Shown here one piece after another: positions 641 through 53,215 of a stretch of 64,000 nucleotides of DNA. The position numbers were made by a program, and so were the translations under genes. Origin of the DNA: Isurus oxyrinchus (taxonomy: Eukaryota); the NCBI GenBank assembly GCA_026770705.1, contig JANJGN010000071.1, positions 1,426,001-1,490,000 of the forward strand. Direction: 5' to 3'. How positions within the stretch are numbered: position 1 is the first letter of the stretch; every line of letters begins with the position of its first letter. Under the pieces are notes generated by a model. The model searched no databases and was not told the origin of the DNA. It was given only the letters and a program-made list of their open reading frames with translations.

Positions 641-922
641 ATTCCACAGTGATGGTTATGAACCCCTCCACTGCTCCATGTTCATTCTCTGCCACACACT
701 GATATTCTCCAGTGTCCCTGGATGTAACGTGAGGAATCACCAACCACAGCTCATTGTTGGAACTTGTTCTGTTCATTGGGACATTAAGATGTCGCCACAT
801 CAGGTTAGAAGCTGGGAAGCTCTCGACAGAGCAGATTATCACTGCAGAATTCCCCTCAATTATATTGATCGATGAAGCGTTAATCATATCTGGAGAAGTA
901 ATTGAGAGATTCCGTGGTGCGT
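641..922 (-). CDS. Gene A Siglec-like C2-set Ig exon (D3 type)
   Basis: 282 nt, acceptor ttttag and donor gtgagt, phase 1-1; (Y)APRNLSITSPDMINASS..VIICSVESFPASNLMW..DTGEYQCVAENEHGAVEGFITITVE. Confidence 0.85.
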
Positions 923-1039
923 CTAAAAACAAATACAGATCAGTTAACTTACACTGACTGTGAAGCACTTTGAAAGACACTGAGAATGTGAAAGGTGTGA
1001 TGTCAATGTACGTTCTTTCACCACATAGCCCGTAATCCA

Positions 1040-1520
1040 GGCAGACACTTCAGTTCAGTATTGAGGGCGTGCTGCACTGTCAGAGGGTCAGTACTGAGGG
1101 AGTGCTGCACTGTCAGTGTGTCAGTACTGAGGGAGTGTGGCACTGCCAGAGGGTCAGTCCTGAGGGGATGCTGCACTGTCGGAGGGTCAGTAGTGAGGGA
1201 GATCTGCACTGTTGGAGGGTCATTACTGAAGGAGTGCTGCACTGTCAAATGTTCGCTTCTGAGGGAGTGCTGCACTGTAGGAGGGACAGGGAGTGCTGCA
1301 CTGTAGGAGGGACAGTACTGTGGGAGCGCTGCACTGTAGGAGGGACAGTACTGTGGGAGCCCTGCACTGTAGGAGGGTTACTGCTGAGGTAAAACTGCAC
1401 AGTCAGAGCGTCAGTTCTGATTGACCAGTGCAATGTTGGAGGAGCACTACTGAGGGATCATTACACTATTAGAGAGTCAGTAATGAGGGAGTGCTGCACT
1501 GTAGAAGGGTCAGTGCTGAG
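1040..1520. repeat. 33-bp minisatellite (GTCAGTACTGAGGGAGTGCTGCACTGTCGGAGG family)
   Basis: Degenerate tandem units visible; produces spurious repetitive ORFs. Confidence 0.9.
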
Positions 1521-1791
1521 GAGGCAAACACGCTGTTATGTGTGTACTATAGGCCTCCTGTGATAATGTGGAGTGCCAGGTACCTTTAAGAGAATACAAG
1601 TGGATAAACCATGTGACAGTACTGACCAATCACTGGACAGTGTGGGCCACTGGTTAACTGTAAGTCTAGAGCTGGAGGTGGCTGTGGGAGCAGGCAAGGA
1701 TTTAGTGCTCTGCCCTCTGTTACAATAAATAATCAGCTTGTTCTAATGTCGGTCTCTCTTGGTTATTGATAGCGAGCATCAACTAAGAAGA

Positions 1792-1935
1792 ACTCAGCAG
1801 GTCTGGCAGCTTCGGGGGAGAAGAAAAGAGTTGATATTTCGAGTCCTCATGACCCTTCGACAGAACTGAGGTCATGAGGACTCGAAACGTCAACACTTTT
1901 CTTCTCCGCCGATGCTGCCAGACCTGCTGAGTTTT
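1792..1935. repeat. Inverted-repeat (hairpin) pair of a Penelope-like short repeat
   Basis: aactcagcaggtctggcagc...ttcgagtcctcatgacc is the reverse complement of ggtcatgaggactcgaa...gctgccagacctgctgagtt; ~65-bp arms. Confidence 0.75.
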
Positions 1936-2059
1936 TCCAGGTAACTCTGTTTTTGTTTTGGATTTCCAGCATCCGCAGTTTTTTTGTTTTTATCAACTAA
2001 CAAGTGTATATGAAGGAGTGCAATTCGAATTTACTCAACCAGTGAACTCATAGACTCAA

Positions 2060-3810
2060 GATATAAAACCAACAAACAGTCAGGGAGAGATGGACAATCC
2101 AACATGTGATCACATTTCAGAGATGTGTAAGAATAATAAAGCAGTAATACTCAGGGATTTTAACTACCCAAATATTAACTGGGACAGCTTTAGTGAGCAA
2201 GGTAGGGAGGGAGAAAAATTCTGAAGTTGCATCCAGGAGAAGATTTTTAGCCTGTGCATAGAAAGCTCAACAAGGGAGGGGACAGTTCTGGACCTAATAT
2301 ATGGAAAAGCGCCGGGGAAGTTGGAAAGCGTATCAGTAGGGGAGAAAGTGACTGGAACTCAATTGGATTTAGGACAGTTATGGAGAAGGATAAGTTTGTG
2401 CTGGGAATAAAAATTCTAAACTGGGGAAAGGCTAATTTTACTAAGATGAGATATGATTGGGCCCAAGTGGACTGGGAGAAGCTCTTTGCAGATAAAACTG
2501 TGTCAGAGCAGTGGGAGGCATTCAAGGAGGGAATAGCGAGAGTACAGAGCAGATATCTTCCTGTAAAGACAAAGAGGGAGACCAAGTCTGGAGAACCCTG
2601 GAAGACAAGGAACATAAAGGTTAGGATTGAGAAAAAAGAGAAGCTGATGGCAGATACTGAGGGCTCAATACAGCAGAGTCCCTAGAGGAGTATAAATAGT
2701 GCAGAGGGGAACTGAAAAAGGACATTAGGAAAGATAAGAGAGTGCATGAGAAAGCACTGGTGAGTAGAATAAAGCAAAACCCAGAGGGGTTTTTTAAATA
2801 TGTAAAGAGCCGGAGAATAACTCGGGAAAGAGTGGGGCTGATTAGGGACCATCGAGGTAATGTGTGTGTGGACCTGGAAGACGTGGGTACAGTCCTCAAT
2901 GAATACTTTGCATCAGTCTTCACAATGGAAAAGGATGATGCAGGTATAACATCAGGGTGGAGGACTGTGAAATATGAGATGAAATTAACGCGGAGAAAGG
3001 AGGTACTAGTGGGTTTAGTGGCCTGAAAAGTGGATAAATCCACAAGCCCAGATGAAATGAATCCAAAGCTGTTGAGGGAGGCAAGGGAAGAGATATCAGG
3101 GGCCCTGGCAGTAATTTTCAAATCCTCTCTGGCCACAGGTGAGGTGCCAGAGGACTGGAGGATGGCTAATGTTGTCCCATTATTAAAAAAGGGAGGAAGG
3201 GATAGATCAGGAAATTACAGGCCAGTCAGTCTAACCTCGGTGGTGGGGAAGTTACTAGTAAGAATTCTGAAGGACAGAATGAATCTGCACTGGGAGAGAC
3301 AAGGATTAATCTGGGATATTCAGCATGGATTTGTTAAGGGAAGGTCATGTTTGACAAACCTGATCAAATCTTTTGAGGAGGTAACCAGGAGTGTTGATGA
3401 GAGTAATGCCTTTGATGTCGTCGACATGGGCTGAGGAAGGCTTTTGATCAGGTGCCTCTTGGCAGAGAGGCCAAGAAAGTAAGAGCCCATGGGATCCAAG
3501 GCAAAGTGGCACGTTGGATCCAATATTGGCTGAGGCAGGAAGCAGAGGGTGATGGTGGAGGGATGTTTCTGTGACTGGATGTCTGTTTCCAGTGGGGTTC
3601 CACAGGGCAAAGTGCTGGGGCACTTGCTGTTTGTGGTGTATATAAATGAATTGGACTTATATAAAGGGGAAATGATCACGACGCAAATGGAATTCAACCT
3701 GGAAAAATGTGAGGTGATGCACTTGGGGAGGGAGTTGCTGACCAGCATGGACATGATGGGCTAAATGGCCTCCTTCTGTCCTGCAAGTGTCTATGAGTCT
3801 ATGAGTCCAT
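2060..3810 (+). mobile_element. Degenerate CR1-type LINE (endonuclease/RT fragments, internally deleted)
   Basis: Fragments GDFNYPNINW, VPEDWRMANVVPL, NYRPVSLTSVVGK, QHGFVKGRSCLTNL, SGVPQG; 3' microsatellite tail ctatgagt repeats; stops and frameshifts. Confidence 0.85.
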
Positions 3811-3978
3811 GATGCACTGTCGGAGAGTCAGTAGTAAGGATGTACTGCCTGTCAGGGGTCACTTTTTACCAGTTAAATACCAATGGTTTGTTTATAAACA
3901 AAGTGCAGTATGTGGGAGCTTGCTGTGCACATTTGATACTATTCCAACTAATGTAGATTGAAGGGTGTTTGTACTTAC

Positions 3979-4275
3979 ATAGCACAGTCAGTACGAGGGT
4001 CCGCTCCGATGAAACAGATGGATATCTCACTCTGCAGCTGAGAGTGTGTCCGTGGTGTTTGAGTGATGGGATCAGGGTCAGAACAGAAGTATGGGTCAGA
4101 GTGACACCATGCTGAGTTACAGTGTTTGAGACTGATCCACGTACGTCAGTGGGAGTGTCCCAGGTTAAGACAGGTGCTGCTGTCCCATTGCACGTTGTGT
4201 TGAAGGTGCAGCTTACATCCACACGCTTTCCTGCAATAATTTCAGCAGGGAATATCGTGGGTTTATCTGTGAAAT
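3979..4275 (-). CDS. Gene A Siglec D2 C2-set exon
   Basis: 297 nt, acceptor ctgtctgttag and donor gtaagt; DFTDKPTIFPAEIIAGKRVDVSCTFNTTCNG..LTW..TLSCRVRYP; extra Cys (TTC) typical of the Siglec V-C2 interdomain disulfide. Confidence 0.85.
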
Positions 4276-5219
4276 CTAACAGACAGAGAATGGATCCTTT
4301 TAGACAAATATAATGTGAAGCATCAGTTCAAATAGAAACCACAGTCCCACAAGAGAAAGCATTTTTACAAGGATGATATCAGAACTGAGAGGTTACAATG
4401 ATCATTTTAGAATTGTCTCTTTTTACACTTGTTGAATCTCTGTCACTCAGATTAATACACTCTCACTCAGTGACACTTGATTTGACCAGACTGGGTGAGG
4501 GTGGAGGAACAGCTCACAGCTCGGGGAGAACAGACTCAGCATTTGGAAAAGGATATAGAGACACTGGAGAGGGTGGTAAAAAGCTTCACAAGGATGATCT
4601 CAGCAATGTGAGGCTTTACCTATCAGGAGAGGATGTACAGGCTGGGTCTCTGTTCCCGTGAACAGAGAAGGTTGAGGGGTGACATCATTTGACCTTTGAA
4701 GTAATGAAAGGATTTGATCGAGTAGACATGGAGAGAGTGTTTCCACTCATCACAATGAACAAAACCAGAGGCTGACAATATAACATCCTCACAAATAAAT
4801 CCAATGGGGAATTCAGGAGGAACTTCTTTACCCAGAGAGTGGGGAGAATGTGTGCTTCAAGAGTCACTTCATTGGCTGTGAATTGATTTAGGATCATCCT
4901 GAGGTGGTGAAAGGCGCTATAGGAATGCAAGTCATTCTGTTGTCAATTTGTGGGAATTTAAAACAGGATTAGAGAGCTTGATAAGATTGGATAACCTGAT
5001 AACACTGATGGACACACTCAATCTATTTAATCATTGATATTAAAGTGAGTATTAGAGGTTGCTTTAGGACTGAACTGGAAGCTATCACCCGGTTATTGAG
5101 AATCAGACAGTGTGTTATAATAAACTGTGTTTTGTGTTAATATGTAAACGTCACAGTTTGTGTTATTTCCCATTGAGTGTTGGATGTGAATTGTTGAGTA
5201 ATTATAACACAGCACTTAC

Positions 5220-5588
5220 CAGAAATGTGAAGCTGGGTTACAGGATAGTAGTTGTAGTTATTTGTACTTCCAAATTCTATTCTGAAAAAATAAGGTCCTG
5301 CATCTTCCCATCTGATGTTGTTTATAATCAGGGAACAGTCGCCATCTTTCAGGTCTCCAGACAGCCGGGTCCGATGGTGGAACCGTGGTAACTCGTGACT
5401 GTGATCCTTGGAGTGAAAGGCAAAGGGATTGTCGAATTTGTGTTTCTCGTTATTAAACCAGATTCCGACTCGTGGTTGGCTTTCCAAATGTGCTGGATAA
5501 CTGTAATGACATGGAATCTGTACACACGAACCTTCCTGCGCTGTCACTTCTCGTGGAGTGTCACCTTTCCACTCTTGTGACAGTCCAA
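5220..5588 (-). CDS. Gene A Siglec V-set exon (V1), essential Arg intact
   Basis: 369 nt, ccccag/gtaagt; VGLSQEWKG..EGSCVQIPCHYSYP..W..GDCSLIINNI..DAGPYFFRIE (Siglec B/E-strand Cys pair, no F-strand Cys, YFFR arginine). Confidence 0.9.
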
Positions 5589-6539
5589 CTGGGGAGAGAA
5601 ATATCTATATTTAATTCTGGATCCTCAATGTCAACTGAATCTTCATTGTCACTTCATTGTCTAAGGAATCTCGTTGGATCCTCATTGTCTGAGGAGTCTC
5701 TTTGGATCCTCAATGTCTAAGGGATTATTTCTGATCCAAACCCCATATTGTTGTATTGTTGATTCCGATGCAGCATTGTAGACTGACTTGTCCCCAAGCT
5801 CAGCACTGACCCTACTCCAGCAGACACTGTGAAACACACTAACAAAGCGCCTTTAGCCTGAGCTCTGCCTGTGTCAAGAGCAAAGACAAATATACAAACT
5901 GAATATTGACACCTTTACACACGGACAGCTTTGCCTTCCTTCTCTCTTTCAGTTATCTTGCTCCCTTATTGAAGTATCTAGCAAGGTGAGAATGGACAGG
6001 AAGTGTGACACTGAACAGCCTGTCTATTCTAGGAGCTGCTGTGTTGTCTTCATGGGAAATTCTGACTAAAATCAGCAAAAGACACTAATTTCAGGCCATT
6101 GCTGTCAGAGTCTCAGCATCAAGATAGACTTCATCCCCTGAATTTTGTGTTTGATTTTCTACTCAAACTTTCACCTCCCCAAACCTCCACCCCGACCCCA
6201 CAAGTCACTCGCTGACCTACACTGGCTCCCAGTCCAACAATGCCTCGATGTGATTATTTTCACACTTGATTTCCAATCCCTCCATCACTCCGCTCCACTT
6301 CCTGTCTCTGTAACCCCCTCCAAACCTACAACCCTCTGTGATCTCTGCTCTCCTCCAATTCTGCTGTCAGACAGGGAGTCAGTGTATATCAGTGAGCACA
6401 GGGGTGGTGGGTGAATGGGACTTGGTGTGAGTTTGTACACTGGCTCACTGCTGAATCAGTTCCCTATCAGAGCTCAATAAGAATGATCTTTTACAAAGAC
6501 TATTAACCATAAATCTGTCCAAGCTGACAATGATATTAC

Positions 6540-6579
6540 CTTGGAGAAGTGACAGGAGGCAGTAATATTTCCCGATTAT
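6540..6579 (-). pseudogene. Gene A signal-peptide exon with start codon ATG>ATA
   Basis: Reverse complement reads ggacaATAatcgggaaatattactgc..ctccaag|gtaata; paralogs read ggacaATGatcggg. Confidence 0.75.
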
Positions 6580-7011
6580 TGTCCACTCCCAGATATTCCT
6601 TTAGCTTCTGACTCTCAAACTCTGAAAGAGAAAGGAGTTAATGAGACCTCACCTCTTGTCCGACAGCTCTCGAGAGATCTGAACTGCTTTTAGACAATGT
6701 CCTCTGAGACTAATTTGGTTCTCTGTGGGATGATAGGTGCTCTGCAGAGAGTTAAAAAGCTTTAAAAAAAAAATCAATGAAGGACTTGCATTTCTATATC
6801 GCCTTTCACCTCCTCAGGATGTCCCAAAGCTCATGTACCTTGAGCTAGAAAGATGTTCTGTACAACAGACTTGAGTCTCACACCCAGATCTCAATAATCA
6901 GTAGAAATCTTTCAAAGGCATCAATCATTGGAATCTGTCTTTATAAAGTCACAACATCAACAAAGGACGGTGTTGGTGGTGGAAGTGAATTCCAATCGTT
7001 CCGTTACTTAC

Positions 7012-7151
7012 CCAGGACCTGTCCGACTGCTCGCCTGGGGAGGAACTGCCCACACGCTCTGCTTGGGCTGAATGACCTCTTCCTGTGCTGCTCCTCTGTG
7101 TGTTTAATTAGAAAGGGTTGATGTGTCACTGTGAGACAAAATGAGGAAGTT
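7012..7151 (-). promoter_or_regulatory. Gene A non-coding exon 1 and proximal promoter (PU.1/ETS site)
   Basis: Same exon as 14901-14987 with donor ctgg|gtaagt; AAAATGAGGAAGT at 7138-7150. Confidence 0.65.
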
Positions 7152-7369
7152 GCATCAAAGTGACAGAACAGCTCGTGTTTTGAGTTTTTTGAAGCTGTTA
7201 ACCCTTTGCGTTCTGGACTTGTGATGATATTTCTGCTCAAAAGCGGAAAGTCATTGACCAGGAATTCTCCTGTGGGACACTGGATTTCGAACCCTCTCTC
7301 TCTCTGAGTGAGAAGGTCGTCAGTTCGAAATTCATTTGGCAAAATTCAGGCTGGCAAACCAGACCGGCA

Positions 7370-8460
7370 CTCGGTGTCAGGACTGAGAGTCCTGCACAGT
7401 CGGAGAGTCAGTACTGAGGGAGTGTTGCACTGTTGGACGGTCAGCACTGACTTAGTGCTGCACTGTCGGAGGGTCTGTACTGCGAGTGTTGCACTCTGGG
7501 TGTGCCAGTGCTGAAGGAGTGCTGCACTGTCAGATGGTCAATGCTGAGGGAGCGCTACACTTTTCAAGCATCAGTACCTAGGGGCTGCTGCACTATCAGG
7601 GGCTCATGACTAAGGGACCACTGCACAGTCGGAGGGTCCGTACCCAGGGAATGCTGCACTGTCGCAGGCTCAGTACCGAGGGAGTGCAAACTTAAGTAGT
7701 GACAAGGGTTGAATAAACTGGTGATGAGGTGAAAAACAAGGAAGAAAAATCAAGGAATGAGAGTCCTGCACAATCGGAGGGTCAGTACTGAGAGAGAGCT
7801 GCACTGTTGGAGGGTGAGTATTGAGGGAGTGCTGCATAGTCAGAGGGTCAGTACTGAGGGAGTGCTGCAAGGTCAGAGGGTCAGTGCTATGAGAGAGCTG
7901 CATTGTCAGAGGGTCAGTACAGAGGGACTGCTGCACAATCGGAGCGTCAGTACTGAGGGAGTGCTGCACTGTCAGAGGGTCAGTACTGAGGGAGTACTGC
8001 ACTGTTGGAGGGTCAGTACTGAGGGAGTGTTGCACTGTGAGAGGGTCAGTACAGAGGTAGAGCTGCACTGTCAGAGGGTCAGTACTGAGGGAGTGCTGCA
8101 CTGTCAGAGGGTCAGTACTGAGACAGAGCTGCACTGTCAGATGGGCAGTACTGAGGGAGTGTTGCACTGTGGGAGGGTCAGTACTGAGAGAGTGCTGCAC
8201 AGTCGGGGGGTCAGTACTGAGGGAGTGCTGCACAATCGGAGGGTCAGTACTGAGGGAGTGCTGCACTGTCGGAGGGTCAGTACTGAGGGAGAGCTGCACT
8301 TTCGGAGGGTCAGTACTGAGGGAATGCTGCACTGTTGGAGGGTCAGTACCGAGGGAATGCTGCACCGTCGGAGTGTCAGTACTGAGGGAGTGCTGCACTG
8401 CTGGAGGGTCAGTACCGAGGGACTGCTGCACTGTCACAGGTTCAGTACCGAGGGAATGTA
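7370..8460. repeat. 33-bp minisatellite array
   Basis: ~30 units; a ~65-bp block (tagtgacaagggttgaataaactggtgatgaggtgaaaaacaagg) occurs at ~7696 and ~8486. Confidence 0.9.
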
Positions 8461-8639
8461 AACCGAACCCATTGGTCAACTAAAATAGTGACAAGGGTTG
8501 AATAAACTGGTGATGAGGTGAAAAACAAGGAAGAAAAAGCAAGGAATGAAAGCAAGCAAATTGAAATCGGGCTGTGCCTCACGCAGTGATTATAAATATA
8601 ATTTCCATCCTAATAACCGAAGCAGTCCCCTCGAAGAAT

Positions 8640-11130
8640 GCTGCAGTTTGGAAGAGTTGATCCTGTCGACCCAACGGTGGGTGATTGGTATCATTATGGT
8701 GAACTTCTCGCGTTCTTTTTCCAAGTGAATGACATTGATGGGGAGGAGAAGAGGCGAGCGACCCTCTTATCCACGTGTGGCAGTAAGATTTAGGGATTGA
8801 TGCGAACTTTAATGCCACCCGGTGCCATGGATTCAAAAAGTTTAGATGATATAGTGAACCTTGTGAAGATTCCTTCCCAGCCCCAGCCCTCGGTAACGAT
8901 GCAACGGTCCAAATTTAACTCAAGAAATAGAGTCCCAGGGGAGGTAGCTGCATGTTATGTGGAAATTCTGAAACAGTTCACAGGACATTGTGAGTTTGGT
9001 AAATCTATAAATGATATGCTGAGAGATCGACTGGTGTGCAGAATAAATGAAGATGCGATTCAGAAGAGATTACTGTCTGAAACAGATTTGGATATTCAGA
9101 AGGCTCTGGGAAGAGTGCTGGCTAAGGAAAGAGCAGTGAGGGACTCGAAAAACATATGGTGAGAGCAAAATGTCACCGTCCTCATGTTGGGTGAGGAGCC
9201 TCAGCCAAGAAGTGCGGGAAAATGTACAGCTCTGATGAGAAACGGGAAACCTCCACCACTAGCAGCAAATAAAAAGGAATGACTTATCAGAGGAAACATG
9301 GAATAATGTGAACAGAGGTGAAGCAGACAACCTCGTAGTGAATGGAACTTTAAAAAAATCAATTTTTTTTACTGTCATCGAAACAGAGAGCCCATGAGAG
9401 ATTGCAAGGATAGAATCAGGCAGAGTTTCAACCAAGAGAGAAAACCCTGTGAGATCCATAACATAGAAGAGCCTGAAGTAACAGATTCAGATAGTTATTC
9501 ATTGTATAATTTAAAGGTAGGAAGAACAGAGCCAATCTATGTAACAGTGAGGGTGAATGATAGAGCTCTCCGAATGGGGGTGGACACAGGAGCTAACACT
9601 ACGCTAATTGGGGAGCATACTTTCAAATACTGGAATCATGGGGAAAGTCAATTAAATTTGGAAGAAACAGATGACTAATTGAAAACTTACACGGGAGAAG
9701 ACATTCAAGCCAAAGACATAAGCAGGGTTGTTATACAGTATGGAAGTCAATCAGTAAAATGACCCTTGATGATAGGAGCTGGTGAGGGACCAAGCCTCCT
9801 TGGACGAAACTGGCTGAAAGATATTAAACTGGATTGGTCTGAGATCTTCCAACTGAGAGCCAGTGGGCTACCTGAGCGACTACAAAAATACATCTCAGTT
9901 TTCCAAGATGAACTCGGGGAGATCCAGGGGCTGCAAGCAAAAATTCATGTGGATCCAGACTCTACCCCTCTGATTTATGAAGGCACGACCAGTACCTTAT
10001 GCAATGTGGGAAAAGGCAGATGCTGAATTGGGCAGGTTCTAGAAACTGGGAGTGATACAATCTGTGCTGTCCTCAGAATGGGCAGCACCAATAGTCCCTG
10101 TACCTGAGCCTGGCCAAAGTGTTTGTGGAGATGACAAGAATTGACTGGAACGGCCTACACGGAGCTGATATGAGCCATGCTTATCAACAATTGGAGTTCG
10201 AGAAGGCCTCCCAGAAGTTTGTCACAATTAATACACACAAAGGGTTGTATCAATAAACCGGTTTGCCTTTCAGAGTCTCCTCTGCAGGATCACAGTGTCT
10301 TAATGGCACAGCAGGAGGCCATTCAGCCCATCGTGTCTATCCCAGCTCTCCAAATGAGCATCATGACCTAGTGTCATTGCCCTGCCTTTCCCCATGCCCC
10401 TGCACCTTTTCTCTATCCAAATAACCATCTAATGCCCTCCTGAATGCCTCGATTGAACCTGCCTCCACAACACTTCCAGGCCGTGCATTCCAGGCCCAAA
10501 ACTTAGTTGTGTGAAAAAGTTTTTTCTCACGTCACATTTGCAACATCAGTCATGCTAAATGTCAGCGGGAAGGTGGAAAGGAGTCCAGGAAGACAGGAAA
10601 CTGGACATGACTGGCATAGCCATGACAGGAAGCTGACCGTAGGAGAGACGGTATATGTGAAGGATTTTAGAGAACGGCCAAAGTGGTCACCGGGTGAAAT
10701 AAATGCAGCGATTGGAACTCTTTCTCACCATGTGAAAGTGGAAGACCGAGTCATATGGAGACATGTGGGTCATATAAGGAGGAGAGAAACAAAGTACCAA
10801 GAAACAACCCCACCAGTCTTCACGGCTGCGTCTATGTCTCCTGTTGAAAGAACTCAGCTGAGAACAGATGTGTCTGAAGGGTCCGTTGTACCTGCAAGAG
10901 TTGAGGAAACAGGTTTGCAGGTGTCCACCGAAGAAGCTGGTGTTGGGACAACATCAGAAAAGGAGACTCCTGACAAAGCATCTGAAGCTGTGGATCTGAG
11001 ACGTTCCAGACGCATAAGGAAACCCCCCAGAAAGACTGAATTTGTAAATTACTGATCTGTGTAAATCATCTGATACTTTGAGAAAATGGTAAAAGTAAGT
11101 GTAAAATGTATTTCTGAGTAAAGGGGGAGG
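8640..11130 (+). mobile_element. Degenerate Gypsy/Ty3 LTR retrotransposon internal region
   Basis: Gag-like MLRDRLVCRINEDAIQKRLL, protease VDTGA and LLGRNWL, partial RT, integrase C-terminal region; polypurine tract aaagggggaggg ~11119-11131. Confidence 0.8.
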
Positions 11131-11131
11131 G

Positions 11132-11862: not shown

Positions 11863-11971
11863 GTATCAATAATTAATGTATGTATTGTGGGTGGAATTTT
11901 TGATTTGGATCAATAATACTAAACACTGATCACTCTGATTGTCACTCTGATCATTTCTGTTTCTATTACAG

Positions 11972-12088
11972 AAGAAAGATGAGAAGGATCTGGAAATGAA
12001 ATCTAACCGCGGAGTCAATCCTGATACAGATGATGATCTTTACGCAAACTGTGATTTTGCCAAGGATTCTGTTTATGGGAATTTATAA
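11972..12088 (+). pseudogene. Orphan copy of terminal cytoplasmic exon (KKDEK..DDLYANCDFAKDSVYGNL*)
   Basis: Identical to 45235-45351 with acceptor ctattacag, but no upstream + strand gene body in the window. Confidence 0.7.
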
Positions 12089-14750: not shown

Positions 14751-14846
14751 CAGTCAATGGCCCTTCAACCACATTATTGGCACGCAAAGGGTTAACAGTT
14801 TTCTAACAGTGCGAGGCAAAGAGTTGCTTTCTCACTTGGTACCAAG

Positions 14847-41876: not shown

Positions 41877-41904
41877 GTGAGTTACACAGAGTTGAACGTT
41901 CTCT

Positions 41905-42950: not shown

Positions 42951-43139
42951 TATATGTGAATCCTCCTTATAGAAACCTGCATGTACATGGATATTATCAA
43001 TAAATATTACATAGATAAATGTTATTTGTATAGACCTTTCATGCATAGACAATATCACTTCACAAGTTCAGAATTACTACATGTACATAGGGAACCATTC
43101 TCAAACTGTACCGGAGTCATTCATTGGCTGATTTTACAG

Positions 43140-43236
43140 GGCGAGATTCCAATGAATGGAAAGCAGGATTGCTTGGAGCTGGAATCTGTTTGAGTGTTGG
43201 ACTGAGTGGATTCTTCATCTTCAAGTGTGTGAGAAA
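43140..43236 (+). CDS. Gene C transmembrane exon (uncharged TM)
   Basis: Acceptor attttacag, donor gtaagt; phase 1-2; WRDSNEWKAGLLGAGICLSVGLSGFFIFKCVR; in frame with D3c; frame not shown in the ORF track. Confidence 0.8.
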
Positions 43237-43996
43237 GTAAGTGTGAAGGTTTAATTGGTTGTTTTTGAACATGTTTTCTTCAACCTTCTCTCCGTATAGA
43301 AAGAACTTGCATTTCTATAGCACCTTTCACAACCCAAAACCCTCCACAACCCCTGAAGAGCTTTGATGTTCACTCACTGTTTAACATCTCATCCAACACT
43401 CAATGTTTCACAACTCAGTCCTGTAACAGGCAGTGTTGACCTGGACCATAAAATACCTTGTGACTTCCTGAGGATGTGAAAGGGGATATATAAATGAAGA
43501 CATTTCTTTTGTTAGTGAATGCAATCTCTTTCCATTTTCAGTGTCTAGCTCACTCTCCCTCTTATCTCCACTAATAACCTCCTTCTCATTCTCTCTCTCA
43601 TTCACTCTCTCTCCAATCTCCACTAATGCTCTCCTTCTCATTCTCTCTCTCATTCACTCTCTCTCCAAACTCCACTAATGCTCTCCTTCTCATTCTCTCT
43701 CTCGTCCTCTTACACGTTGTTCAGTCTCTCACACATTTTAAACGGGCGCTGAGCAACATCTGTTCCTTCAGAAGATCCACCTCAACACCTGGAGTGAGCA
43801 GTGAATTGAAACTCACTCAACGACAGCTCAGCTTTACACAGGAATTACGTCACAGAGTCAGGACACAAAGGGTTAACAGTTTGCTTACAACACAACACTA
43901 AGGCCCTACGTTTCAATGAAAGGGTTTTCACAATTGTTCCCCAATTCCTGATTTGACTCACAGAGACACATCAACCCTTTCTCATTAAATACACAG

Positions 43997-44081
43997 AGGG
44001 AGCAGCACAGGAAGAGGTCATTCAGCCCAAGCAGAGCGTGTGGGCAGTTCCTCCCCAGGCGAGCAGTCGGACAGGTCCTGG
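43997..44081 (+). other. Copy of exon-1 module inside gene C tail region; candidate phase 2-0 cytoplasmic exon
   Basis: 85 nt between acacag and gtaagt; reads KGSSTGRGHSAQAERVGSSSPGEQSDRSW in frame with the TM exon and the next exon; homology to promoter/exon 1/intron 1 spans ~43840-44247. Confidence 0.5.
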
Positions 44082-44592
44082 GTAAGTAACGGAACGATTG
44101 GAATTCACTTCCACCACCAACACCGTCCTTTGTTGATGTTGTGACTTTATAAAGACAGATTCCAATGATTGATGCCTTTGAAAGATTTCTACTGATTATT
44201 GAGATCTGGGTGTGAGACTCAAGTCTGTTGTACAGAACATCTTTCTGGTTAAATTATGCAGACAGGTTACACACAGTCTACCATTATATCCCATCGGGTC
44301 TAGAAGATTAAGGAGTGATGTAACTGAGGGGTTCAAACTGATTAAACACTCGATAGGGTCGATAGAGAGAAGCTATTCCCTCGGGTGGGGGTGGTTGGTG
44401 GGTGTCGGGTGGAGTCCAGAACAAGGGGGCCGGAACTTCAGATTGGAGCCAGGCCGTTCAGGGGTGATGTCAGGAAGCACTTCTTCACACAAAGGGGAGT
44501 GGAAATCTGGAACTCTCTCCCCAATAATCAAACCCAACACCGAATACACATCATGTTGATTGTCACTCTGTCCATTTCCATCTCTATTACAG

Positions 44593-44697
44593 AAGAGAGG
44601 CGAGGGGAAAGCAGGAATCAAATCGAACCATCATGTTGATGAATATCGAGGTCCTGTTTATGAAAACTGTGAGCATGGTTGGGCTTTGAGGAATCAG
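44593..44697 (+). CDS. Gene C cytoplasmic exon with YENC motif
   Basis: 105 nt, ctattacag/gtgagt, phase 0-0; KRGEGKAGIKSNHHVDEYRGPVYENCEHGWALRNQ. Confidence 0.75.
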
Positions 44698-44832
44698 GTG
44701 AGTCACACACCACAGGATCCCCAGCCTCTCAGCTGCTCCAGTAGCCTGGTTATTGATATGGCTGCTCCAGTCCTGTATCTGCAACGTTTTATACAGTCAC
44801 TCCCAAACCCAACCAAACTCACAGCCAACACC

Positions 44833-45134
44833 GTTCAGAATCAATAATCAAAACCTGTTCAGTATCAATAATCAAACCCCGTTCAGAATCAATAATCAAA
44901 CCCCGTTCAGTTTCAATAATCAAACCCCATTCAGAATCAATAATCAATCCCCATTCAGTATCAATAATCAAACCCTGTTCAGATTCAATAATCAAACTCC
45001 GTTCAGTATCAATAATCAAACCCCGTTCAGAATCAATAATCAATCCCCATTCAGTATCAATAATCAAACTCCGTTCATTATCAATAATCAAACACCGTTC
45101 AGTATCAATAATCAAACCCTGTTCAGTATCAATA
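44833..45134. repeat. 21-bp minisatellite (GTTCAGWATCAATAATCAAACCC)
   Basis: ~14 units; spurious INNQTPF ORF. Confidence 0.9.
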
Positions 45135-45234
45135 ATTAATGTATGTATTGTGGGTGGAATTTTCGATTTGGATCAATAATACTAAACACTGATCACTCTG
45201 AATGTCACTCTGATCATTTCTGTTTCTATTACAG

Positions 45235-45351
45235 AAGAAAGATGAGAAGGATCTGGAAATGAAATCTAACCGCGGAGTCAATCCTGATACAGATGATGAT
45301 CTTTACGCAAACTGTGATTTTGCCAAGGATTCTGTTTATGGGAATTTATAA
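45235..45351 (+). CDS. Gene C terminal exon with LYANC and ITIM-like SVYGNL
   Basis: 117 nt to TAA; KKDEKDLEMKSNRGVNPDTDDDLYANCDFAKDSVYGNL*; SVYGNL fits [ILVS]xYxx[LV]. Confidence 0.8.
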   Translation, partial: KKDEKDLEMKSNRGVNPDTDDDLYANCDFAKDSVYGNL

Positions 45352-46684
45352 ACTGAGCAAGAATGAGACACACACAGTGTGGGGAGAATACAGAACGGGA
45401 GAATCAATCAAAACTCCAATTTACCTTCCTAATATCCACAGGAACTCACTCCCAGGAAATAGATTTAAACCTCTTGTTACAATCTGATGGAATTTCTTTG
45501 GAATGATCTATCCAGGATGATTGTCTGTGGGTTTCAATTTGAACATCCTCCTTCAGAATTGTCCCTCCCTGTTGGAAACATCCTTCTCTCCATTCTGATT
45601 GTAAATGTCTTTAGATATCGTTCGATGATGTACCAGGACAGAACGGACAAATTCAATCCCGTGTCCTTGATTATGAGTTAATTTTCATTCTGTTATTCAC
45701 CTTCCTGTCTGTCAGTGTTTACAGAATATTCATCAGCCAGTGTAGATTTCAGGAAATGCAGGATCGGTGGATAATTGGAGCAGAGGAGATTGGTAAAATT
45801 TACTCAGCATTTTGTAGTCAAATGTATTTTCAGATATATATTTGGATTTTACACTTCATCGTTAAAGAGCAAAACTAACAGCAATCCCGGAAACAGGGAA
45901 ACAATTTGATTGGAGATTTGAGAAATTCTCTGCAGTTCAGAGGATAACAGATGTGATACAGTGCCACCACTGGTGGCAGGACATCATTTCAGCGTGACAT
46001 GTTTACATTGATGTTGCCAATGAACATAGGAAATTATGATGTGAAAAATTGGTTGCAGGTTTAACTTCTTCAATATGTCATGGATGGATGAGACAGCTTT
46101 GACAACAGAATGAGATATAGCTGCAATAAACCATCATTTTAGTCTTTCACACTTGGAGAGTACAATGAGCATCCATCCTGAAGGCTGAGTGGATGGGTGG
46201 ACTGTGCGATGTGTTACAGATCACAGAGACCAACATCCTTGATCCTGGTTCTGCTCTGTGTTTGATGAGATACTTGGATAAAAGATTGGGAAAATAAATA
46301 ATCCTCCGGCATTAACCTGTAACTGGTCTCTCCTTCTGTCAATGTCCTGAGGACAGAATTGGGTTCGAGGTCCAAAATCAGACATTCTTTGACTGCCCAT
46401 TGAATAGGAACAGGAGGAGGCCATTCAGCCTCCTCGAACCTGCTACACAGGAACAAGAGAGCACCTGATACAAAAACAGAAAATGCTGGAGAAACTGAGT
46501 AGGTCTGGCAGCATCTGTGCAGAGATAAACAGAAATAACATTTCGAGTCCGTATGACCCTTCTTCAGAGTCTATAAGCAAGAAGTCTGTTTCTCTCTCCA
46601 CAGCTGCTACCAGACCTGCTGAGTTAATGCAGCATTTTCTGTTTTTATTTCAGATTTACAGCATCTGCAGTATTTATTTTTAAT

Positions 46685-47960
46685 GACAGGAGGACATTCA
46701 GCCTCTTGATCCTGTTACACAGGAACAGGAGGAGGCCATTCAGCCCCTCGAGCCTGTTACACAGGAACAGGAGGAGGCCCATTCAGCCCCTCGAGCCTGT
46801 TACACAGGAACAGGAGGAGGCCCATTCAGCCCCCTCGAGCCTGTTACACAGGAACAGGAAGAGGCCCATTCAGCCTCTTGATCCTGTTACACAGGAACAG
46901 CAGGAGGCCATTCAGCCCCCTCGAACCTGTTACACAGGAACAGGAGGAGGCCCATTCATTCCCTCGAGCCTGTTACACAGGAACAGGAGGAGGCCCATTC
47001 AGCCCCCTCGAGCTTGTTACACAGGAACAGGAGGAGGCCCATTCATTCCCTCAAGCCTGTTACACAGGAACAGGAGGAGGACCATTCAGCCACTCAAGCC
47101 TGTTACATGAGGACAGGAGAAAGCCCATCAGCCTCTTGAGCCTATTATACAGGAACAGGAAAAGGACATTCAGTCCCTCAACACCCTTCCACAGGAACAG
47201 GAGAGAGTCTCAGCTCCTCGAGCCTGTTACCCAGGAACAGGAAGAGGACATTCAGTCTCTCAACCCACTTACACAGGAATAGGAAACCCATTCAGTCCCT
47301 CGTGCCTGTTACACAGGAAAAGGAGGAGGCCCATTCTGTTCCCTCGAGCCTGTTACACAGGAACAGGAGGAGGCCCATTCTGTCCCCTTGAGCCTGTTAC
47401 ACAGGTACAGGAGACCCATTCAGCCTCCACAAGCTTGTTACACAGGAACATTAGGGGCTCCATTTAGCCCCATCAAGCCTGTTACACAGGAACAGGAGGA
47501 GGCCCATTCAGCCACTCAAGCCTGTTAGATAGGAACAGGTGGAGGCCCATTCAGCCCCATGATGCTGTTACACAGGAACAGGAGGAGGCCCATTCTGTCC
47601 CCTTGAATCTGTTACACAGGAACAGGAGGTGGCCCATTCAGACCATCTAACCTGTAACACAGGAAAACAAGGAGATCCATTCAGCCTCTTGAGCCTGTTA
47701 CACAGGAACAGGAGGAGGCCTATTCGGACACTCGAGCCTGTTACACAAGGACAGGGGGAGGGCATTCAGCACCTGGAGCCTGTTACACAGGAACAGGAGG
47801 AGGCACATTCAGCCCTGCCAAAGACTGTTACACAGGAACAGGGGGAGGCTTAATCAGCCACACAATCATGTCACACTGGAACAGGAGGAGGCCCATTTAG
47901 ACCCCTCGAGCCTGTTACACAGGAACAGGAGGAGGCCCATTCAAACCCTCGAGCTTGTTG
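46685..47960. repeat. ~41-bp minisatellite (duplicate of 13420-14750, about one unit shorter)
   Basis: Same unit; duplication offset shifts from 33263 to 33218. Confidence 0.9.
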
Positions 47961-48064
47961 CATATGAACAGTCGATGGCCCTTCAACCACATTATTGGCA
48001 CGCAAAGGGTTAACAGTTTTCTAACAGTGCGAGGCAAAGAGTTGCTTTCTCACTTGGTACCAAG

Positions 48065-48205
48065 CACTTCCTCATTTTGACTCACAGTGACACATGCACC
48101 CTTTTTAATTAAACACAAATAGGGAGCAGCACAGGAAGAGGTCATTCAGCCCAAGCAGAGCGTGTGGGCAGTTCCTCCCCAGGCGAGCAGTCGGACAGGT
48201 CCTGG
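48065..48205 (+). promoter_or_regulatory. Gene B' promoter (PU.1 + AP-1) and non-coding exon 1
   Basis: CACTTCCTCATTTTGACTCA; donor at 48205/48206. Confidence 0.65.
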
Positions 48206-48655
48206 GTAAGTAACGGAACGATTGGAATTCACTTCCACCACCAACACCGTCCTTTGTTGATGTTGTGACTTTATAAAGACAGATTCCAATGATTGATGCC
48301 TTTGAAAGATTTTTACTGATTATTGAATTCTGGGTGTGAGACTCAAGTCTGTTGTACAGAACATCTTTCTAGCTCAATGGATGAGGGAAGTGCAGGGACA
48401 TGAGATTTGGGATGTCCTGAGATAGTGAAAGGTGCTATAGAAATGCAAATCAATCATTGTTTGTCTTACTTAAAGACTTGTAACTCTCTGCAGAGCACCT
48501 ATCATCCCACAGAGAATCAAATTAGTCTGTGAAGACATTGTCTAAAAGCAGTTCTGATCTCTCGAGAGCTGTCGGACAAGAGGTGAGGTCTCATTAACTC
48601 CTTTCTCTTTCACAGTTTGAGAGTGAGAAGTGGATGGAATATCTGGGAGTGGACG

Positions 48656-48695
48656 ATGGTCGGGAAATCTTATTTCATCCTGTCACTTCTCCAAG
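48656..48695 (+). CDS. Gene B' signal-peptide exon MVGKSYFILSLLQ
   Basis: ATG at 48656, 40 nt, donor gtaata. Confidence 0.75.
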
Positions 48696-49398
48696 GTAAT
48701 ATCATCATCAGCTCGGACAGATTTATGGTTAATATTCTTTGTAAAAGATCATTCTTATCTCTTTATCTCTGTAACCTCCTGCAACTCACCCAAACAACTT
48801 CCCAGATCTCTGTGTTACTCCAATTCCGGCCTCTTGACCATCCCCCGATTCCCATCACTCCAATACTGGCGGCCGGGCCTTCAGCTGCCTGGGGCCTGAG
48901 CTCTGGAATTCACTCCCTAAACCTCGGGGATGGAGGAGATCAGAGGGTTTCATTTTACTGCAAATCACCACGGCCACATCACAGCTGCAGTGAGAATAGA
49001 CAGAGGGTCCAGCCCTCGCACTTCCTGCACAGTTTCACCATAGCAACCACAATATGGAAATTTAAAAATACTGAAAGTTAAACTGAAGCTCAAACCAGTC
49101 AGTGTAGAGAGATGAGATGTTTACACAGTTTCCCTGTGTATCTTGTAGACACTGTGTTGGGTGGAAGACTGGCTTCACTAAACAGGGTCCTGAGGACCAT
49201 GAGCCAATGTAGAATGAACTTGTCCACTCCAGTGTCCAGGATTCTCTTCCCTCCGTTGTGAAACCTTGGGGAGTTCCTTGTGTGTCCTGTAGATGGTCCA
49301 CACTGCAGCCACTGTGCCCCAGTGATGGAGGGAGTGGATATCGAGTCTAGTGGATCTACAAACTATCCAGAGTTAAATATTGATATTTCTCTCCCCAG

Positions 49399-49773
49399 TT
49401 GGACTGTCACAAGATTGAAAAGGCGACACTTCACGAGAGGTGACAGCGCAGGATGGTTCGTGTGTACAGATTCCATGTCATTACAGTTACTTATCAAATT
49501 TCATAGGGAGATCACGTGTCGGAATCTGCTTGAAAGGAATAGATGGGAACCCACAGCCGAAATGGTCTATAGCCTTTCATTCCGAGGGTCACAGTCACAG
49601 GGATCAAAGATTCCACCATCGGACCCGGCTGTCTGGAGACCTGAAAGATGGCGACTGTTCCCTGATTATAAACAACATCAGACGGGAAGATGCAGGACCT
49701 TATTTTTTCAGAATAGAATTTGACAATGGTCCGAGCCATAACTATTACCCTGTAACCCAGCTTCACGTTTCTG
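49399..49773 (+). pseudogene. Gene B' V-set exon (V5) with premature stop
   Basis: TGA at 49416-49418, the same lesion as V2. Confidence 0.85.
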
Positions 49774-50244
49774 GTAAGTGCTGTGTTATAATTACTCAAC
49801 AATTCACATCCAACACTCAATGGGAAATAACACAAACTGTGACGTTTACATATTAACACAAAACGCAGCTTATTATAACACACTGTCTGATTCTCAATAA
49901 CCTGGTGATAGCTTCCAGTTCAGTCCTAAAGCAACCTCTAATACTCACTTTAATATCAATGATGAAAAGCATTAACTGTATTATCAGGTTACCACTCCCA
50001 TCAATCTCTCCTGTCCTGTTTAAAAGTCTGACGTATCGTTAAAAGAAAGATGTGCATTTCTGCAGCGCAATTTACAACCTCAGGAGGATCCAAATCCCTT
50101 CACAGCCAATGAAATTATTCCTGAATTGTAGTCACAGATGTAAAACACAGCAGGCAGTTTGTGCACAGCAAGATCCAACAAACCACAAGGTGATAAATCA
50201 CCCAGATCACTGAGGAAATGAGAAGCCAGTGAACTCAAACCTCT

Positions 50245-50282
50245 GGTCTGATGAAGAGTCATACGGACTCGAAACGTTAACC
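50245..50282 (+). ncRNA. Minimal hammerhead ribozyme motif (duplicate)
   Basis: ggtCTGATGAaGAGTCatacgGACTCGAAAcgttaacc. Confidence 0.6.
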
Positions 50283-50631
50283 CTGTCTTCCTCTCCACTG
50301 ATACTGTCAGACCTGCTGAGTCTTTCCAGCAATTTTTGTTTTTGTTTCAGATTTCCAGCATCCGCAGTATTCTGCTTTTAACTCCAATCTCTGGTCTGAT
50401 CCTCTTCTCTCATCCAGTGTTCTCAATTCACATGTCTCGGAGTGAACGTGTATTAAGCTGAGAGACAGAAACACTACTGCCAAAGAGCAAGAAAATCTTT
50501 CCTGATCATTGTAACCTCTCAGTTCTGATATCATCCTTGTAAAAGTGCTTTCTCTTGTGGGACTGTGATTTCTATTTGAACTGATGCTTCACGTTATATT
50601 TGTCTAAAAGGATCCATTCTCTGTCTGTTAG

Positions 50632-50928
50632 ATTTCACAGATAAACCCACGATATTCCCTGCTGAAATTATTGCAGGAAAGCATGTGGATGTAAGCTGCA
50701 CCATCAACACAATGTGCAATGGAACAGCAGCGCCTTTCTTAACCTGGGAAACTCCCACTGACGTACCTGGATCAGTCTCAAACACTGTAACTCAGCATGG
50801 TGTCACTCTGACCTATACTTCTGTTCTGACCCTGATCTCATCACTCAAACACCACGGACACACACTCTGCTGCAGAGTGAGATATCCATCTGTTTCATCG
50901 GAGCGGACCCTCGTACTAACTGTGCAAG
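50632..50928 (+). pseudogene. Gene B' D2 C2-set exon
   Basis: 297 nt; several replacement changes versus B (e.g. TLSC>TLCC, PVL>PFL). Confidence 0.8.
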
Positions 50929-51251
50929 GTAAGTACATACACCTTTCATTCTACATCAGCACTCCCTCAGCGCTGACCCTCTGACAGTGCAGCCCGTTCT
51001 CAGTGTCCACATTCTCAGACCTCTCAAAGTGCTTCACAGTCGATTGAAGTTAATTGATCTTTATTTGATTATTGCTGAATAAAGAGACAAGCTGTCTAAA
51101 GTTTACATCTCGCACACACCATTCTCCATGGCAACACGTCCACCTATCAGAGACCACTTGCCAACCAATCAGCACTCTCTTCCCATTAAGTATAAATTGT
51201 GGTTCACTTTCTGTTGGTAATCCTGCGAACGGGCTTCTTGATTCCTGCCCT

Positions 51252-51404
51252 GACATCTTAATGTCCAAATGAACAGAACAAGTTCCAACAATGAGCTGTG
51301 GTTGGTGATTCCTCCCATTACATATCGGGACACTGGAGACTATCAGTGTGTGGCAGAGAATGAACATAGAGCAGTGGAGGGGTTCATAACCATCAGTGTG
51401 GAAC
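51252..51404 (+). pseudogene. Gene B' 5'-truncated D3 exon
   Basis: Same insertion/deletion as 18034-18186. Confidence 0.8.
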
Positions 51405-53075
51405 GTGAGTGTACACAGACATCAACATCTCTCTTAGATTCAAACATTGCACAAACACACACAAATATACAGAACTAAATAGACACATGCAGACACACAT
51501 GTATGAGCAATTACAAAGACACACTCACGAACAAACACACTAGCACACACTCCCCTGTGGCTTACCTGAGTACTGCACTGGAGAGTTGGCCTGAATTCTG
51601 GGATTTGTGTTCCCAATCATGTTTATGGAAGAATATGGAAATTACAAAGTCTATAACAGACAGTCAGATGCATAGAGACACTCACAGATACTCTCTGCCT
51701 CTCCAACTCTCTCTCTCCCTTTAAGAAGCTTCCTGAAAGCTAACCCTTCGAACAATCACCGGCCCCAACTCCTCCTTATCTGATTCTGTGTGATTTTGTT
51801 TGTGTATCTGAGAGTAAGAGAGAGGTGGAGAGGTTTAGTTAGAGAATTCCTGCTAGTGAAAATCTTACATCATTTACTCACCTTTCCAGTGCACATATTT
51901 CCCAGTATGTCCAATGCCCCTGTTTATAATGATGACTGCCTATGTAAACGTCACGCTGTAGTTACATTCTCCCACCAGTGGTGGCATTGTAGCACTTAAT
52001 CCTTGTGTTTCCCAGCTTTTCAAGCAACTCCACTTCCCAGTTTGCTACATAAGCTGTGAGTTCATCAGAATTAAATTATTTCTCAAATGATAGATTTGAT
52101 AATTCATTTTATTGAAAACTCCCTCAGTGCCTCCCTGAAGGGTTTACACTCTCTGGGAAGCAGGAATAGGCTGGATGTTGGGGAGTTCATCTTTTCCCAG
52201 AGAGTAGGGATCCTTGAGAATGTGCTGTCAGTGGGTGTGGTAGTTCCTGTTTCTCTGTCGCCTTCAAGAGGGATCTGGAGTGGTTACTGACTGGGGGAGA
52301 GATCATGGAAGCGGAGAATGATACAGCACAGGAGGAGGCCATTCAGCCCATTGAGGCTGTGCCAGGTCTTTCAATGTTCTATCCAATCAGATCCACTAAC
52401 CACCACTCCACTTTACCCCATCTTCCTCCTTCAAGTGTTTATCCAATTTCCCTTTTGAAAGTTCCTATTGAATCTGCTTCCACCGCCCTTTCAGGCAGCA
52501 CCTTCCAGATCACAACAACTCGCTCTGTCAAAACAAATTCTCCTCATCTCCCCCTCCAGTTGGTCAATCTGTGTCCCTCTGGTTACCGACCCTCCTGCCC
52601 CTTAAATACATCGATACTGTTCACCTCGACCACTCCCTGTGGGAGTGAGTTCCACATTCTCCCCTCTCTCTGGGTAAAGATTGGAACTGTTTATTAAGCG
52701 GGGTGTGTAAGTCCGTGGGGGAGTCCATCTCGATTCTGCCCGATTCGCACACGCATCCGAGATGGATTTCCATCCTGCACTAAACGTTTCCAGAATTTTC
52801 TACAGCACAATCCTGTACACAGCGATGGAGAGAAACATTGGACAGGGAGTCCAACAGCACAATGATCCATTCTCACCAATGTTCCACGCGAAGGGGAAAG
52901 TTCCGATTGTCCACTCTTAGAGTGTTTACAATGAAAACATTCATTCCACATTGAATCCCAGTGGATGGGTCAATATTACAGCAAATGTTGCAGTGATATG
53001 AAGCTTGATTGTTCAGCCAGAGTGAGAGATTGAAAGCGGAGAGTCAGTGATGATTTCTTTCTGTGTGTTCTCTAG

Positions 53076-53215
53076 ACAGTGGAGGAGAGATTCTGCACGT
53101 GATCCTGATCCTGGGAATACGAGCTGTGATATTCCTTGTGGCTGTGGTTATCACTATCGCTGGAGTCTGTGTCTGGGAGAGACAAACAGTGAAAGGAAGT
53201 CGACAGACTGTTTGA
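53076..53215 (+). CDS. Gene B' activating-type TM/short-tail exon (itself intact)
   Basis: xSGGEILHVILILGIRAVIFLVAVVITIAGVCVWERQTVKGSRQTV*; Arg CGA at 53120-53122; no Tyr in tail. Confidence 0.8.

Follow-up and report, generated by a model that had tools for sequence, protein, structure and literature searches.

Does the shark Isurus oxyrinchus carry paired activating and inhibitory receptors of the Siglec family, laid out as in mammals, and are both halves of the pair intact? The question is raised by a 64,000-nucleotide (nt) stretch of its genome (assembly GCA_026770705.1, contig JANJGN010000071.1, positions 1,426,001 to 1,490,000), which we call the window and number from its first letter. 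An earlier note on this DNA had described a Siglec-like cluster in which two genes, B and B', end in a membrane exon with an arginine, and a third, gene C, ends in an uncharged membrane exon followed by a tyrosine-bearing tail. Our answer, to which we give a probability of about 60%, is that the window holds a Siglec-type tandem cluster in which gene C is open and has a tyrosine tail, while B and B', which have the activating layout, are most likely pseudogenes. A six-frame motif search found each motif named in the note (ILILGIRAVIFLV, VYENC, LYANC and SVYGNL) in its place; stop codons appear when the exact intervals given there are translated because the exons there begin in phase 1.

By their sequence, the genes of the window are of Siglec type, within the I-type lectin family, and sialic-acid binding is predicted for them. 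Pfam assigns the V exons to V-set and Ig_CD22, the second-domain (D2) exons to C2-set_2 and the D3 exons to Ig_3/I-set. Against the PDB, the V exon of gene C matches Siglec-5 best (E 6e-16), followed by Siglec-8, Siglec-7, CD33, MAG, Siglec-10 and sialoadhesin, and its match to CD22 is weak (E 9e-5). The bit scores are 62 for Siglec-5, 58 for Siglec-8, 56 for CD33, 55 for MAG, 49 for Siglec-1, 36 for Siglec-15 and 26 for CD22. The D2 matches include the second domains of MAG and CD33. In the alignment with Siglec-5, YFFRIE of the second V domain (V2) of gene C lies on YFFRVE, the strand F that holds the sialic-acid arginine. This arginine (YFFR) is kept in V2 of gene C and in the V domains of B, B' and a further gene, A; it is replaced by Thr in the first V domain (V1) of gene C and by Met in V1 of the next gene downstream. 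The Siglec cysteine pattern is present at the sequence level: the B-E intrasheet pair is seen in SCVQIPC ... DCSL of V, and D2 has the additional Cys (TTCNGT) of the V-D2 link.

A full HMMER scan returned 1371 relatives, the nearest being RefSeq models of basking shark, white shark, catsharks and Mustelus that carry the names Siglec-8/12/13/14 or CD33-like; at E<=1e-20, RefSeq gives the name Siglec or CD33-like to 77 elasmobranch proteins. A V-domain tree groups the elasmobranch V domains in a single clade (support 100/99), apart from a white shark CD22-like protein, an anchovy sialoadhesin-like protein and a tetrapod CD33-type group that includes bat Siglec-8; the tree was built without a MAG reference and leaves open the branching order among the major groups, including the link to the tetrapod CD33-type clade. 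Because the elasmobranch V domains cluster alone, we regard the genes as a lineage-specific expansion of elasmobranchs rather than simple orthologues of one conserved Siglec, which bears out what the note had proposed. The membrane-proximal immunoreceptor tyrosine-based inhibitory motif (ITIM; LxYAxL) and the distal TEYSEI-type motif of CD33-related Siglecs occur in no tail exon of the window, and neither a second C2 exon type nor a CD33-type tail exon with ITIM and immunoreceptor tyrosine-based switch motif was found within it. The CD33-type tail pair LLYANI...TEYAQI occurs in paralogues of other sharks.

What does gene C encode? We placed the following exons in it.

23776-23860, + strand: probable non-coding first exon, a copy of an 85-nt module with a GTAAGT donor after it; a homologous copy is joined to a leader in RNA
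24311-24350, + strand: leader exon from ATG (MIGKSYFLLSLLQ), phase 1 donor, leader as in RefSeq shark Siglec models
29634-30011, + strand: V1 exon, V-set, YFFTIKF without the sialic-acid arginine; VGLSQEWKG, the 'first V' type
33202-33570, + strand: V2 exon, V-set, YFFRIEF; AEPSQEWKG, the 'internal V' type
34384-34680, + strand: D2 exon (C2-set), from Pfam C2-set_2 and PDB matches
39086-39367, + strand: D3a exon (Ig), the first member of a tandem triplet that repeats every 1.24 kb
40328-40609, + strand: D3b exon, from alignment and splice-site check
41595-41876, + strand: D3c exon, from alignment and splice-site check
43140-43236, + strand: uncharged membrane exon (RDSNEWKAGLLGAGICLSVGLSGFFIFKCVR), phase 2 donor, 94% identical to basking shark P0160
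43997-44081, + strand: cytoplasmic exon 1 (GSSTGRGHSAQAERVGSSSPGEQSDRSW), 85 nt, phase 2 to 0, found by tblastn with P0007 and P0017
44593-44697, + strand: cytoplasmic exon 2 (DEYRGPVYENC), phase 0 to 0, VYENC at 44656-44670
45235-45351, + strand: last exon (DDLYANCDFAKDSVYGNL, then stop), LYANC at 45301 and SVYGNL at 45331

All exons of gene C (12 of 12) have AG and GT sites, their phases chain and each is open; exons were searched singly by reference and their phases checked exon by exon, without a joined spliced model. The product would comprise a leader, two V-set domains of which the outer lacks the arginine, four C2-type Ig domains, an uncharged helix and the tyrosine tail. The leader peptide derived from homologues, M[I/V]GKSYFLLSLLQ, locates leader exons at 15438, 24311, 48656 and 57105, and with it no leader exon was found between 30100 and 33141. 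The most likely start of gene C is the leader at 24311, followed by two V domains (only the second has the arginine), because no leader lies in that interval and because the V at 33202 has the internal form and that at 29634 the first-V form. Both forms were taken from two- and three-V shark models, and two-V models are known in basking shark, white shark and Mustelus; the candidate V1 exon at 29634-30011 would then be part of the gene C mRNA. One assembly gap falls within the gene.

38412-38555, no strand: run of N, left unfilled, that interrupts an imperfect (AC)n microsatellite between D2 and D3a of gene C, within the intron

The gap interrupts no recognised exon or frame and may conceal an exon; the gene C model is independent of its length because the flanking exons are both in phase 1.

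The tail of gene C depends on a small exon. In the earlier note the uncharged membrane exon and the tyrosine-motif tail exons were correctly seen, but the 85-nt exon at 43997-44081 was omitted. Phase 2 at the end of the membrane exon (GAGAAA/GTAAGT) does not fit phase 0 at the start of the VYENC exon, and joining the two directly gives a tyrosine-free frame with a stop inside the VYENC exon; the 85-nt exon is required and brings the tyrosine tail back in frame. The same exon occurs in proteins of bamboo shark, white shark and basking shark, and basking shark P0160 shares the membrane exon and all three tail exons of gene C. Transcripts were consulted as Logan contigs of four runs aligned to 47900-53300, three from one sample of one organism and the fourth from another, with the RNA nature of the runs presumed by the tool. 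Contig ends link the last letters of the membrane exon and the first letters of cytoplasmic exon 2 to a copy of cytoplasmic exon 1 (loose ends 48121 and 48205).

The arginine-bearing genes follow a simpler plan.

48656-48695, + strand: leader exon of gene B from ATG (MVGKSYFILSLLQ), from homologue leader and splice-site check
49399-49773, + strand: V exon of gene B, in-frame TGA at 49416-49418, core Trp changed to Cys (VGICLKG), YFFR kept
50632-50928, + strand: D2 exon of gene B, open, with five private amino-acid changes, one an extra Cys
51254-51403, + strand: relic 3' half of a D3 exon in gene B, bypassed by the RNA joint from D2 to the membrane exon
53076-53215, + strand: terminal exon of gene B (SGGEILHVILILGIRAVIFLVAVVITIAGVCVWERQTVKGSRQTV, then stop), arginine membrane helix and 12-residue Tyr-free tail
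15438-15477, + strand: leader exon of gene B', from homologue leader and splice-site check
16181-16555, + strand: V exon of gene B', TGA at 16198-16200 and Trp-to-Cys as in B
17414-17710, + strand: D2 exon of gene B', from splice-site check
19853-19974, + strand: arginine membrane exon of gene B' (SGGQILGIRAVIFLV...), with an 18-nt in-frame deletion and the shorter helix ILGIRAVIFLV

That B and B' end in a single exon combining a membrane arginine with a short tyrosine-free tail, as the note had described, is borne out by the motif search, which places the arginine helix ILILGIRAVIFLV of B at 53102-53140, and by the splice sites; the membrane exons of B, B' and gene C all have canonical sites and start in phase 1. 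The ends of white shark P0167 and P0157 share 91-96% identity with the terminal exon of B. B and B' themselves are 97.8% identical, with 2.2% divergence over the whole 5.4 kb. The claim that their ectodomains are nearly identical to that of gene C did not hold: at the protein level the V domain of C is 73-77%, and its D2 87-91%, identical to those of B/B'.

Signs of lost function are first met in the V exon of B and B'. Codon 6 of this exon, after the canonical acceptor CCCCAG/TT, is a TGA in place of a conserved Trp codon, and B and B' read GLSQD-stop-KGD where all other copies and homologues read GLSQEWKGD. The core tryptophan of strand C is lost as well (VGICLKG in both), a residue that is W in all relatives including human Siglecs. 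Between D2 and the arginine exon only the 3' half of a D3 exon is left. The D2 exons of B and B' differ by 6 replacement changes and 1 silent change, with the second Cys of B standing beside the canonical one; exon divergence between B and B' is not below intron divergence, and their V domain sits on a long stem branch (0.23) in the V-domain tree. The ratio of replacement to silent substitution rates (dN/dS) among the copies ranges from 0.3 to 4.5 on few changes and is too weak to decide. Because of the common TGA, the lost core Trp and the deletion in the membrane helix of B', B and B' are probably pseudogenes. The note had taken them for working activating partners; with an early stop and the other defects, they do not look like such partners here. 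B and B' are recent duplicates with the activating layout, consisting of leader, V, D2 and terminal arginine exon. By analogy with mammals, where this layout couples the receptor to an adaptor with an immunoreceptor tyrosine-based activation motif (ITAM), they would be activating partners that have been inactivated, as has happened to human activating Siglecs. As a separate observation, a patch in the F-G loop differs between the two copies (49725-49739 in B, 16508-16521 in B'): B reads DNGPSH like V1 and V2 of gene C, and B' reads DSRNRY like white shark models. From its sequence the patch looks like a short gene-conversion tract.

Is the arginine exon spliced to Ig exons at all? All four runs show a joint of V with D2, 49772->50631, and a joint of D2 with the arginine exon, 50926->53074; both are GT..AG and bypass the half D3 exon. 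The note had named a lack of such splicing as the result that would overturn its proposal; the second joint is present, at the level of the gene family. The arginine exon ends RefSeq models of white shark (P0156, P0157, P0167), S. canicula (P0158, P0168) and S. torazame (P0006), and LGIRAVIF is invariant across these models. In the three white shark models the junction of D2 with the arginine exon, TVQDSGGEILHVI..., is as in B, and the V domains of the white shark arginine forms are 93-95% identical to V2 of gene C. Judged from these sequences, the hallmark of a paired receptor is visible across species rather than inside the window. The warning that automated annotation could miss both endings has been overtaken, since RefSeq already predicts both in several related sharks. 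One contig runs past the D2 donor (50927) into TATAAGCCGGAGATTTCCCAGCAG..., which reads YKPEISQQ, the beginning of another type of C2 exon that catshark models contain; because the window holds no such exon, this contig comes from a paralogue elsewhere.

Several observations weigh against the view that gene C is an intact inhibitory-type gene accompanied by dead activating-type copies. An AG lies 25 nt downstream of the normal V acceptor of B (49421-49422), and its use would drop the stop and keep the frame. A contig matches the terminal exon of B and its 3' flank without mismatch, so B may be transcribed. The D2 letters of the contigs (G at 50683, T at 50703, T at 50864 and A at 50868) are those of the A/C-type D2 and not of B/B'. 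Because the B/B' duplication is recent, little can be read from their open D2 and membrane exons or from the dN/dS values. Finally, we infer an inhibitory role for gene C from a single ITIM match in its predicted tail. Could B and B' after all be working activating receptors paired with an inhibitory gene C, the stop being evaded or confined to an allele of the sequenced animal? Evasion could use the downstream AG (16203-16204 in B'), giving leader-G-DTSREV... in frame, or could skip V altogether, as leader and D2 join in frame. The remaining exons are open with intact splice sites, RNA shows splicing of D2 to the arginine exon, and white shark P0167 has an identical layout of V, D2 and membrane exon. 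We nevertheless think this explanation unlikely. The TGA is present in both copies, and therefore predates their 2% divergence or has spread across it; the downstream AG stands behind a purine-rich stretch, the first AG after the pyrimidine tract being the normal acceptor; a V domain rescued in this way would still lack its core Trp; and the D2 changes between B and B' are mostly replacements. The RNA joints cannot be assigned to B, because the D2 letters of the contigs fit the A/C type, which makes their source a paralogue at least 95% alike, and the V part in which the contigs match B without mismatch lies where the copies hardly differ. No leader-to-V joint is among the RNA joints listed, and a search with the V-exon frame of B gave five matches at up to 72% identity, none of the five RNA-derived, and does not reveal the state of the TGA in transcripts. 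Among the read differences listed none falls at 49415-49418; as 94 further rows lie outside the listing, we give this no weight. Probable pseudogenes is the reading we keep for B and B'.

A second question concerns the direction in which gene C signals. Its tail has about 100 residues in three exons with four tyrosines, of which only SVYGNL matches the ITIM consensus ([ILVS]xYxx[ILV]). The inhibitory role claimed for gene C was not supported beyond this one match, and the conserved feature is YxN. In sharks and rays alike the two distal motifs retain Y-x-N; the residue at -2 of the last motif may be S, A, P or V, position +3 of the first is mostly Cys, and the two tyrosines are 10-11 residues apart. 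'Inhibitory' is accordingly used here with reserve, because Y-x-N suits a Grb2-type site or an ITAM-like pair no less well than an ITIM. The tail of gene C could belong to a type other than the classical inhibitory one, either as a pYxN site for the SH2 domains of the Grb2 family or as an ITAM-like pair (YxNC, 6-7 residues, YxN[VIL]), and the genes would then not form an on/off pair of mammalian type. This proposal is possible, if rather unlikely: the conservation pattern and a tyrosine distance within ITAM spacing speak for it, as does the location of the LLYANI...TEYAQI pair in paralogues rather than in the window, but SVYGNL does fit the ITIM consensus, Cys at +3 deviates from the ITAM consensus, and a receptor can also inhibit through Grb2, as CD22 does. 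By analogy with known receptors, the phosphorylated tail of gene C would recruit SH2 proteins, namely SHP-type phosphatases and/or Grb2, and its V2 domain would bind sialylated ligands. The latter would fail if these receptors no longer read sialic acid and their V domains were evolving fast under pathogen pressure, with the arginine-less V1 domains as the working heads. Thr (gene C) and Met (next gene) at the arginine position of V1 point that way, and so do the 16 replacement changes against 1 silent change that separate V1 at 29634-30011 from V1 at 62427-62804 (dN/dS ~4.5). We consider it very improbable, as V2 of gene C and the V domains of A, B and B' keep YFFR together with the Siglec cysteine pattern. 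Sialic-acid recognition through V2 is the reading we retain for gene C. Both arginine-less V1 exons have a basic, aromatic C-C' loop (KMRRYIRNKWSKWS).

How are these genes arranged? According to a self-comparison, a block of about 19 kb is duplicated (11861-31207 and 45124-64000). The copies are offset by about 33.2 kb and 97-98% identical, and the second is clipped by the right edge of the window. The window is part of a tandemly duplicated cluster of Siglec-type receptors. The same comparison gave no colinearity of 1-11860 with 33264-45123. One activating and one inhibitory gene per 33-kb unit, the arrangement originally suggested, does not describe the locus, in which the first unit holds only the last exon of an inhibitory-type gene.

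11972-12088, + strand: orphan last tail exon of C type at the start of the duplicated block, from splice-site check

This exon repeats the tail motifs of gene C (LYANC at 12038, SVYGNL at 12068). Retroelement remains (8794-11052) and a 33-bp satellite (7373-8480) lie before it, and no membrane, cytoplasmic exon 1 or cytoplasmic exon 2 sequence was found upstream of it. More widely, long satellite arrays with periods of ~33, 42-43, 37 and 24 bp sit between and inside the genes (7373-8480, 21410-23500 and 54640-56300; 13424-14753 and 46688-47990; 31283-32240; 44827-45140), the 33-bp array being found on both strands. By eye, open-frame fragments resembling reverse transcriptase, gag or integrase were seen in introns and intergenic DNA at 2251-3760, 30232-31181, 63025-63974, 26247-26945 (- strand) and 36377-38398.

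The 85-nt exon of the gene C tail belongs to a cassette of about 310 bp, made of the exon and some 225 nt of downstream intron, which by alignment is nearly identical in six copies.

43935-44246, + strand: cassette copy
14848-15150, + strand: cassette copy
23712-24023, + strand: cassette copy
48065-48370, + strand: cassette copy
56509-56819, + strand: cassette copy
6847-7152, - strand: cassette copy

In five of the six cases a leader exon follows about 450 nt downstream; the sixth copy is the coding cytoplasmic exon 1 of gene C. The cassette bears TATA-like and CCAAT-like boxes, and the V exons of the cassette-bearing genes differ by 15-28% at silent sites. In the RNA contigs the cassette donor is joined to a leader exon (48205->48614/48617) and to the VYENC exon, and a C-type membrane exon is joined to the cassette acceptor. 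Because the contigs show both kinds of joining, the 85-nt exon has two uses, as a first exon that is not translated and as part of the coding tail. We offer as a speculative and improbable idea that the cassette is a site at which ectodomains and signalling ends are exchanged, a device for remaking pairs that evolved independently of mammals.

Two incomplete genes flank the others.

641-6579, - strand: gene A, with leader 6540-6579, V 5220-5588 (YFFR), D2 3979-4275 and D3 641-922
57105-62804, + strand: start of the next gene, with leader 57105-57144 and arginine-less V1 62427-62804 (YFFMIKF)

Gene A extends beyond the left edge of the window, and its V, D2 and D3 exons are open. Its leader has ATA at 6577-6579 (- strand) where the four other leader exons have ATG, with an in-frame TAA upstream; gene A is either a pseudogene or starts elsewhere.

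How does the cluster compare with known systems? Human activating partners are prone to inactivation, as seen in the SIGLEC14 null allele and SIGLEC16P. The human pairs Siglec-5/14 and Siglec-11/16 have been described (PMC4042635, PMC5701461). Like the window, SIGLEC5/14 and SIGLEC11/16 are neighbouring genes with related V and C2 exons, a basic helix with a short tail set against an uncharged helix with a tyrosine tail, and signs of gene conversion (in the window, the patch at 49725-49739). In contrast to them, the shark expansion is independent and has YxN motifs instead of LxYAxL and TEYSEI; its gene of inhibitory type combines two V with four C2 domains, and the V identity within the pair is 73-77%. 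RefSeq shark Siglecs (among them white shark XP_041037180, basking shark 'Siglec-13 isoform X3' and S. torazame XP_072326180) have the same leader, V, D2 and D3 and share the arginine exon and the C-type membrane exon with three tail exons. These models are open, whereas the V domains of B and B' carry a stop and share no more than 71-73% identity with the V domain of the white shark arginine form.

Human Siglec-12 also has two V-set domains, one of them without the essential arginine. It resembles gene C in that the two V-set domains are consecutive and one lacks the arginine, which in the shark is the outer one; several two-V shark models are named 'Siglec-12' by RefSeq, and we do not claim orthology. 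Gene C shares with CD22 (Siglec-2) a YENx-type tail tyrosine and the Pfam Ig_CD22 match of its V domain, and YENV in the CD22 tail is a Grb2-type site. White shark, however, has a separate CD22-like gene outside the elasmobranch clade. For this reason, and on the weak PDB match, CD22 orthology was rejected.

What do these findings mean for the Siglec family? Fish genomes have been said to lack CD33-related Siglecs in a 2020 paper on bony fish in which sharks were not examined (PMC7226832), and our full-text literature searches found no published description of shark Siglec pairs. The on/off design known from mammals is present in shark Siglecs and already predicted by automatic annotation in several sharks; in this window only half of it appears functional. 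Counts of pairs call for caution, since a copy of activating type may be dead while all its exons further downstream are open. The locus also prompts one to ask which adaptor the arginine form would use; a 2014 survey found no homologue of FcR gamma in shark genomes (PMC4016189). An expansion of arginine-form and tyrosine-tail Siglecs in sharks and rays would place this design, or an independent invention of it, at the base of the jawed vertebrates.

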